A stretch of 64,000 bases of DNA from contig NC_087249.1 of NCBI RefSeq assembly GCF_037042905.1, positions 49,972,001-50,036,000 of the forward strand. Direction: 5' to 3'. The stretch's first letter is position 1. Each line of letters opens with the position of its first letter. A program made the translations under genes and the position numbers. This document shows positions 35,068 to 41,577 of this stretch, one piece after another. This stretch comes from Lytechinus pictus (taxonomy: Eukaryota). Below the pieces are notes generated by a model that searched no databases, had not been told where the DNA came from, and saw only the letters and a program-made list of their open reading frames with translations.

Positions 35068-35247
35068 ACTGGGCATTGTGGCATGCACCTGTAATCCAAG
35101 CTATGTGGGGGAAGTTACAAATTGATGTAGGGGTTTGAGGTTCTAGCCCTGGTCACGTTTTCGGATGGTGACGTTAAAGGTCGGTCCCAGACGTAAATAA
35201 TCATATCTGATTGATACATGTATGACAAAAACTCAATTACACACACT
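35068..35247 (+). mobile_element. Candidate 7SL-RNA-headed chimeric SINE, copy 1
   Basis: CTGGGCATTGTGGCATGCACCTGTAATCCAAGCTA matches the 5' end of the 7SL Alu domain. B-box-like GGTTCTAGCCC, Meta-like core, (CA)n-like tail. Second copy at 41439. Confidence 0.7.
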
Positions 35248-35262
35248 CCAATGGCTCCTCAC

Positions 35263-35525
35263 CTGCATAAACTGCCTGTTGCTGAAGTAGAGATTAGCTG
35301 CATTGAAGTATGCCAAGGCGTATCTCTTATCCTTCTTGATGGCTGCTCGGTAATCAGTCATCGCACTCTCGTAATCCTGCAGAAACTGGTTGACCACGCC
35401 CCTGTTGACGAAGAGTTCTGCAGACTTGCCGATGCGCAAGGCACTGTTCATGTCGAGGAGGGCAGCGTAGGGGTCATTCATCTGCAGGGATACGATGGCA
35501 CGCCCCTCGAGGGCGGGGCGGTAGT
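35263..35525 (-). CDS. TTC6: TTC6-like exon
   Basis: YRPALEGRAIVSLQM...AYFNAANLYFSNRQFMQ; AG/GT. Confidence 0.93.
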
Positions 35526-36070
35526 CTGTGTATGGAGAAACGAGAGGGTTCAAGTTTTAAAGACTTATAAAGGGTTCCAAGATGATGATAGCATATGGTG
35601 GTGCGTGGCTGGGAAGAGGAATGTCAGCATTTGTTTATCTAATTGAATACATAAACAAGAGTAAAAGAGAGACATTCTATTCAGCTCGGCTATGTCACAA
35701 TGATGACATGTATGTAGAGAATCCTTTTTACACCATTTCTTGTACCATCAAACTCATCTCATACCTATTTGCTATTCGGATATTTCCGCTTAACAGGGGG
35801 AAGATTTGAAAACTATCAAATATTCCTGTTTCAATAATTTCATGCAATGGGGTATACAGCATAAATTTTCTCAATAAACCTCTAGGTACATGTACTTCTT
35901 CCATAATTGTAGCATGCAAATTATTTTGCCATGACTACAAATAATTCTACATACATCTTCAGCAAGTCATTACCATTGTGATTTGTCAAACAAAATTGGA
36001 TGTTGTATGGGACACACGTACAGAAAAATTCCTCCATCATTTCTGTAACTACAAGAGAAAGAGTACTCAC

Positions 36071-37316: not shown

Positions 37317-37495
37317 GGGTGTTTCATAAAGCTGTTCGTAAGTTAAGGGAGACTTTAAGAACGACTGGTGAACCTTTCTTACTCGCTAAACCATCGCCAA
37401 TGAACATTTTGGCGTATACCATTTACCACGAAAAAAGGATCACCAGTCGTTCTTAAAGTCGCTCTTAACTTACGAACAACTTTATGAAACAGCCA
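37317..37495. mobile_element. Palindromic MITE
   Basis: ~55-bp inverted arms TGTTTCATAAAGCTGTTCGTAAGTTAAG..ACTTTAAGAACGACTGGTGA; decayed partial copy at ~36982-37060. Confidence 0.8.
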
Positions 37496-41438: not shown

Positions 41439-41577
41439 ATGCACCTGTAATCCAAGCTACATGGGGAGGTTCAATTTCGGGTCCTGGGTTATGTCTTCAT
41501 TCCCAGGTTGGTTCCAGACACAAATCATATTTGATTGATAAATGTCCATCAAAACTCCGTTTATACACACATACATA
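41439..41577 (+). mobile_element. Candidate 7SL-headed SINE, copy 2 (5'-truncated, internally diverged)
   Basis: Shares ATGCACCTGTAATCCAAGCTA and GGTYGGTYCCAGAC..AATCATATYTGATTGATA..AAAACTC..ACACA with copy 1. Confidence 0.65.

Follow-up and report, generated by a model that had tools for sequence, protein, structure and literature searches.

Architecture of the Element in the Window

The window analysed here, a stretch of 64,000 nucleotides of Lytechinus pictus DNA, raises the question of whether a SINE with a head derived from 7SL RNA could have arisen in an invertebrate, as the preliminary description had proposed for a short segment at 35068-35247. The analysis described below indicates that the window very probably contains a copy of a recently active echinoderm SINE composed of four modules, namely a 7SL head, a B box, a hairpin body, and a LINE-like 3' end. 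The 7SL origin of the head, its pairing, the uniform junction between head and body, the number of copies, their young age, and the traces left by retroposition are direct results of the analysis.

The copy in the window (35068-35246, plus strand) is full-length but decayed. It belongs to the subfamily with two B boxes and shows 92.8% identity (blastn) to a consensus of 30 copies, from which it differs mostly by CpG decay. Its head (35068-35115, plus strand) corresponds to the 5' domain of the Alu domain, with helices 2, 3, and 4 and the GUAAU turn; it contains the 7SL box-A region and carries one extra G in this copy. Further downstream, a doubled B box of the tRNA type (35132-35149, plus strand) reads GGTTTGA followed by GGTTCTAGCCC, corresponding in the copy alignment to GGTTCGA followed by GGTTCGAGCCC in the consensus. 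The B box that had been described at 35139-35149 is present, GGTTCTAGCCC being a decayed form of the consensus box. The body (35150-35186, plus strand) is composed of a GTCAC/GTGAC hairpin and a GACGTTAAAGGTCGG core, and a 1-base deletion in the window copy generates TTTT (35158-35161), where Pol III might terminate; no such run is present in the consensus. The 3' stem-loop (35188-35224, plus strand) has a stem of 7 bp in the consensus (CAGACGT ... ACGTCTG), the 3' arm of which has decayed to ATGTATG in the window, and the element ends in a (CA)n microsatellite tail (35240-35246, plus strand).

A second copy with both head and tail had also been reported in the window, and this is true of 41440-41577 (plus strand), where an older, 5'-truncated copy with a short body starts at consensus base 17. 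Its blastn matches fall into two pieces, 41440-41471 (consensus 17-48) and 41505-41571 (consensus 111-177), with 74-88% identity in the matching parts, and the same comparison shows that the head and tail modules are common to the two copies. The deletion in its body is like that of the short-body variant L040. A separate large family was considered as an identity for this second copy and rejected, as its search gave one relative only; the copy is an old member of the SINE family described here.

Origin of the Head from the Host 7SL RNA

A genome search with the Rfam Metazoa_SRP model detected seven full-length 7SL genes (272-283 bits), together with many partial matches of approximately 95 nt (32-35 bits); those of the partial matches that were checked (L038; C1:1208253 and C2:61992460) are copies of the SINE. 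Comparison of the consensus with the native genes showed that bases 1-36 are identical at 34 of 36 positions to six of the seven, including an exact run of 27 nt, which bears out the earlier assignment of the head to the 5' end of 7SL. With small gaps allowed, the homology reaches approximately base 47, the alignment of bases 1-48 having matches in 40 of its 51 columns. When the first 60 nt are forced into a global alignment with 7SL, 45 identities are obtained in 64 columns, the matches past base 47 being at chance level. The SINEBase rule for 7SL SINEs calls for at least 60% identity with 7SL over an overlap of at least 60 nt, and the true homology of approximately 47 nt is shorter than this overlap.

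The search with the Metazoa_SRP model that had been suggested as a check gave a divided outcome, with a weak match for the window copy (16.8 bits, E 0.53) and clear matches to RF00017 for the copies identical to the consensus (30-35 bits, E 2.8e-6, Infernal). The consensus head is also far closer to the native 7SL than to tRNA or 5S RNA, neither of which was matched by a consensus copy at E <= 10 (cmscan), and no tRNA was called by ARAGORN in the consensus copy L015. The source of the 47-nt head of the SINE is the 7SL RNA of the host itself. Consensus bases 48-178 have no significant similarity to the 7SL 3' region, and the helix-5 alignment forced on them by Infernal contains many non-standard pairs; the 7SL 3' end and helix 5, the 3' strand of the Alu domain, are absent from the SINE.

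The seventh 7SL gene, L037 (G000:C12:4895279-4895577, minus strand; 272 bits), has a helix 2 of the form ACT...AAGT, as opposed to ACC...AGGT in the others. Since the SINE head has the same U...A state in helix 2, a gene of the L037 type is the likeliest source. The SINE is also found in the vicinity of other 7SL genes: an older copy (81-91% identical to the consensus) ends approximately 36-40 nt upstream of each of three tandemly duplicated genes on contig 10 (L031:1290-1460, L035:1294-1464, and L036:1315-1464), where it was presumably inserted once, before the duplication of the gene cluster.

Alu-Domain Fold and Possible Binding of SRP9/14

Placed on the Rfam structure, the 47-nt head comprises a GUAAU turn surrounded by helices 2, 3, and 4, which have 3, 6, and 3 pairs, respectively, with standard pairs in 12 of 12 cases. 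The U-turn and helix 3 pairing noticed earlier are both present, and pairing is possible throughout helices 2-4. At the third pair in helix 2, the SINE has U3-A45 and six 7SL genes have C-G, i.e., the pair has changed on both sides, and L037 also has U-A at this place. The fold stability of the whole element did not differ from that of shuffled sequences (z -1.1), and the minimum-energy fold by itself does not yield the Alu fold, so the named Alu structure was evaluated directly. The copies and 7SL genes compared in this study also show that the consensus has U in place of the second C in the loop of helix 4; in mammals, this C forms a loop-loop pair.

Deletion mutagenesis of human Alu found a 46-nt 5' Alu domain to be necessary and sufficient, and in HeLa cells this piece both bound SRP9/14 and was enough to support a single round of retrotransposition (Moldovan, Yin and Moran 2024, PMC11760393). 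The 7SL piece of the SINE, with helices 2-4 and the U-turn in 47 nt, has the same extent as this minimal domain. The latter was an engineered human construct, expressed from a Pol II promoter and mobilised by L1. This shared extent is the main reason to think that the head does more than serve as a promoter and, by analogy with the human domain, the SINE head may bind SRP9/14. As helix 5 is not retained, the affinity for SRP9/14 may be lower than that of Alu or B1. The minimal domain corresponds to SA50, the RNA in the crystal structure of the Alu domain.

A serious possibility, if somewhat short of an even chance, is that the role of the 7SL head is confined to providing box A and a start for Pol III, with no SRP9/14 binding or ribosome targeting, so that mobility would come wholly from the 3' stem-loop and (CA)n through a stringent LINE. 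The element does carry a 3' hairpin of the LINE type and a microsatellite tail of its own, which are all that LINEs with stringent 3'-end recognition need (Kojima 2020, PMC7245038), and the missing helix 5 of the Alu domain, as well as the U in the helix-4 loop, point in the same direction. However, the copied piece ends exactly with the self-contained 5' domain and not with box A, and all 12 pairs have been kept, including the one in helix 2 that changed on both sides. In addition, SRP9/14 binding has been shown in human cells for the equivalent 46-nt piece (PMC11760393), and the pairing of the Alu domain has been kept independently in the hagfish, supraprimate, and shrew-mole lineages.

B Box, Body, and 3' End

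In the consensus, the head is followed by a 16-nt linker and then by GGTTCGAGCCC, a perfect match to the B-box consensus GGTTCGANNCC. Between the 7SL box-A region and this downstream box there are 53-60 nt, a spacing that is workable in type-2 Pol III promoters.

A conserved B-box-like element, GGTTCGAGTC, is also found 25-50 nt past the T-run in six of the seven 7SL genes (L031-L036, on contigs 1 and 10), L037 being the one without it. In the contig 10 genes, the element lies inside a small T-arm-like hairpin with a second T-run after it. No tRNA was called by ARAGORN at these flanks, and the element may, by comparison with yeast U6, represent a downstream TFIIIC site. SINE bases 54-86 align with the flank in the contig 10 genes with a score of 33, a similarity on which the B-box segment might come from the 7SL locus itself.

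Extended to the whole 5' half of the SINE, this would mean that a read-through transcript or a DNA deletion joined 7SL bases 1-47 to a 3' flank carrying the B-box-like element. Such an origin is unlikely, with the recurrence of GGTTCGAGTC in six of seven flanks and the score of the two-box form, reached by 2-6 of 2000 shuffles with the B-box core fixed, in its favour. For the one-box subfamily, however, which is equally abundant and no younger, approximately 560-740 of 2000 shuffles reach the score, which is not significant, and twelve comparisons were made in all. Moreover, the flanks of L032, L033, and L037 show no similarity past the box, and B boxes converge on one consensus anyway. With the flank similarity suggestive in one subfamily only, the origin from a 7SL flank is kept here as a rival explanation and not as a finding.

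Beyond the B box, the body motif occurs 1786 times in the genome, and some variants, among them L040 and the second copy in the window, have lost the hairpin and core through a deletion between GGTC repeats. A search of the full text of the literature with body strings gave no relevant match. The last 60 nt of the element contain the 7-bp stem CAGACGT/ACGTCTG, which appears in the minimum-energy fold predicted for a consensus copy as well as in the centroid fold, followed by AAAACTCAAATA(CA)n, with a tail that varies from approximately 3 to more than 10 repeats among the copies of the 30-copy alignment. The stem-loop is presumed to act as the recognition hairpin for the reverse transcriptase of a partner LINE.

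Family Size, Age, and Subfamilies

A genome-wide DNA search with the window copy produced 1431 first-look candidates, and all 40 of those scored were 87-93% identical to it over the same stretch of approximately 178 bases. Thirty copies were aligned with their flanks and used to build the majority consensus. Similarity among them starts sharply at ACTGGGCG and ends in the variable (CA)n, the flanks being unrelated on both sides. Identity to the consensus is 98-100% for most of the sampled copies, and three of them (L015, L016, and L017, each at 1501-1678) match it exactly. Motif counts across the genome with up to 3 mismatches were similar for the three parts of the element (1539 for the head 26-mer, 1786 for the body, and 1665 for the tail), with 0 for the reversed-pattern controls, and the SINE-specific head 26-mer occurs exactly 485 times. 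The genome thus contains about 1,500-1,800 copies of this SINE family, distributed over all large contigs and mostly as dispersed singles with unrelated flanks. The earlier reading of the locus as a member of an interspersed family, and not a one-off 7SL pseudogene, agrees with this number and with the many copies that are nearly identical to the consensus. The linkage of head and body, which had also been put up for checking, was observed at the same junction in 30 of 30 best matches and in 13 of 16 places anchored by the tail, the remaining three being 5' truncations.

Two co-abundant subfamilies were distinguished, a one-box form of 171 bp (625 matches) and a two-box form of 178 bp (747 matches), the latter arising from a 7-bp duplication that produces two overlapping B boxes. 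The family is young and has been recently active. Its youth and its two clear subfamilies could make it useful as an insertion marker among related urchins. All of the sampled body and tail 31-mers were also present in sequencing runs of two further coded species labels, and nearly half of the sampled 31-mers were found in RNA sets labelled sea urchin or echinoderm metagenome.

Some copies are not dispersed. Arrays in which 2-6 SINE units follow one another head to tail, each abutting the (CA)n of its neighbour, were observed at L008:1340-2354, L007:1164-1679, L012:1504-1859, and G000:C19:10865352-10865950, and tandem SINE multimers of the same kind have been reported in bivalves (PMC11481361). 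At L051 (G000:C1:22736000-22745000), a tandem repeat of approximately 2.53 kb comprises four units, each with one SINE copy and identical flanks.

Retroposition and the Putative Partner LINE

Pattern searches that excluded the body identified dozens of copies truncated at their 5' ends at many different internal points, each with unrelated upstream DNA. Target duplications, which had been suggested as a check, were recovered in part: exact duplications of 8-12 bp flank approximately six independent copies among 54, compared with approximately 0.15 expected by chance, and they are short or absent in most of the 54. The scattered 5' truncations, the variable length of the (CA)n tail, and the occasional target duplications indicate retroposition mediated by a LINE. 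Such a pattern, which differs from that of L1, is given by LINE clades with recognition of a hairpin and a simple repeat at the 3' end. Spread of the family as DNA, through satellite or segmental duplication and not retroposition, is very improbable, since the arrays of 2-6 units (L008, L007, and L012) and the 2.5-kb tandem repeat with one copy per unit (L051) would suit it, but approximately 1,500 single copies dispersed over all large contigs with unrelated flanks, varying 5' truncation points, tails of variable length, and some target duplications would not.

With regard to the LINE that would have mobilised the SINE by retroposition, two pattern searches for the tail preceded by sequence other than the SINE gave only SINE copies bearing indels or truncated at the 5' end, and no recurrent non-SINE sequence preceding the tail was found in them. 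The 3' region of one LINE, 3 kb in length, showed no similarity to the tail. A genome scan with RVT_1 gave 12,239 first-look reverse-transcriptase candidates. Many of these are uninterrupted and of recurring length (1258-1269, 1021-1022, 1008, and 1047 aa), with intact open reading frames of 1,000-1,300 aa, which suggests that several LINE families have been recently active.

Comparison with Known SINEs

SINEs derived from 7SL RNA are known only from supraprimates, hagfish, and shrew mole, and all those described keep both 7SL ends around a central deletion (Kojima 2020, PMC7245038; Kojima 2024; Kosushkin et al. 2026). The 7SL 3' end is present in Alu, B1, Tu, Urop, and the hagfish element alike. 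The preliminary description had confined such SINEs to Euarchontoglires and hagfish, which holds for these two groups but leaves out the shrew mole, described in 2026. In the papers searched, which were published up to 2026, no 7SL-headed SINE from a sea urchin or other invertebrate is reported, and the same papers gave no listing of the present family in answer to whether it had already been catalogued. Surveys of mollusc and bivalve SINEs describe tRNA heads only. The birth of a SINE from 7SL RNA is a very rare event. Judged by the homology of its head from base 1 and the fit to the 5'-domain structure, the urchin element appears to work like SINE1, but it differs from every described SINE1 in having no 7SL 3' end and a B box from elsewhere.

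The element SINE1-1_EBu (Ebu1-1) of the hagfish Eptatretus burgeri is likewise an independent, non-mammalian birth of a 7SL-headed SINE, and it is also a chimera, in which a 7SL piece is joined to body and tail modules of non-7SL origin (Kojima 2020, PMC7245038). Both elements have a microsatellite tail and no poly(A), which implies a stringent LINE partner other than L1, and their copy numbers are 2363 for the hagfish element (PMC7245038) and approximately 1,500-1,800 for that of the urchin. However, SINE1-1_EBu keeps the 5' and 3' regions of 7SL, with a complete Alu domain after the central deletion, whereas the urchin SINE has bases 1-47 only. The RTE partner and the origins of the body have been identified for the hagfish element (PMC7245038), whose host is a hagfish, whereas the urchin SINE resides in an invertebrate.

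Among the other 7SL SINEs, Alu, B1, FLAM-PB1, and Urop resemble the urchin SINE in having a head that begins at 7SL base 1 and comprises helices 2-4, the U-turn, and the box-A region, and in forming young families of high copy number (PMC13023118). Internal duplications involving the B-box region are also found in B1, as in the urchin SINE. In contrast, the mammalian elements are wholly 7SL, with a central deletion of approximately 183 nt, the 7SL 3' end, a 7SL-derived B box, and poly(A), and are moved by L1 (PMC13023118), whereas in the urchin SINE both the tRNA-type B box and the body are foreign, and the 3' end is formed by a hairpin and (CA)n.

The tRNA-headed SINEs of invertebrates, such as Meta/MESC, Deu, CORE, and V (PMC4824008, PMC4758252, PMC11481361), share with the urchin SINE the modular organisation of head, body, and tail, the tRNA-type B box, and microsatellite tails, and bivalve SINEs also share its tendency to form tandem arrays (PMC11481361). 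The head of the urchin SINE, unlike theirs, is not tRNA-like. Membership in the tRNA-derived SINE2 was considered and rejected, as no tRNA head was found by ARAGORN (L015) or by cmscan at E <= 10. The SINE2 A box is TRGCNNAGTGG, and the Meta domain is 66 bp long. It is scarcely conceivable that the head derives from something other than 7SL, whether as a head of the tRNA type that has diverged or as a likeness due to chance or convergence, because the tRNA type of the B box and the 16.8 bits (E 0.53) of the window copy alone against the SRP model are opposed by the 27-nt exact run and 34/36 identity with the species' own 7SL, by a 7SL match that improves when the consensus removes CpG decay, and by the absence of any tRNA according to Infernal or ARAGORN.

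Proposed Mechanism and Its Wider Reading

For the four-module SINE with a head copied from 7SL, we infer transcription by Pol III, binding of SRP9/14, and a partner LINE. RNA polymerase III would start at base 1 by means of the 7SL-derived A region and the internal B box. A LINE recognising the end formed by the 3' stem-loop and (CA)n would reverse-transcribe the transcript into new sites. It is also possible that the 7SL head binds SRP9/14 and so carries the RNA to ribosomes that are making the LINE protein, as has been proposed for Alu.

More speculatively, and with the balance of probability against it, sea urchins may have come independently to an Alu-like strategy based solely on the minimal 5' domain that binds SRP9/14, the 47-nt head docking the RNA on ribosomes and capturing the enzyme of a non-L1, hairpin-recognising LINE, in an element perhaps born from a 7SL gene and its downstream B box. 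If this were true, hijacking of the ribosome would be ancient and general and no peculiarity of L1 or of mammals. An invertebrate lineage that keeps the 5' domain alone represents an independent natural experiment, pointing to the same piece of approximately 46 nt as Alu mutagenesis. The pairing of this domain with a tail not of the L1 type allows the docking on ribosomes through SRP9/14 to be tested for other LINE clades, and sea-urchin eggs and embryos, in which RNA injection and biochemistry are routine, could be used as a test system.

Other Features of the Window

On the minus strand of the window, an open coding stretch with the appearance of a TPR-type repeat was observed at 35263-35560, ending ...NAANLYFSNRQFMQ at a GT donor. 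The SINE at 35068-35246 lies antisense in an intron, and the end of its tail is just 16 nt from the GT splice donor of this TPR-like stretch. A long hairpin at 37322-37487, also on the minus strand, matches the Rfam family MIR8007 with 55 bits (E 2e-8), against a family cut-off of 195, and probably represents an inverted-repeat transposon as opposed to a miRNA gene.
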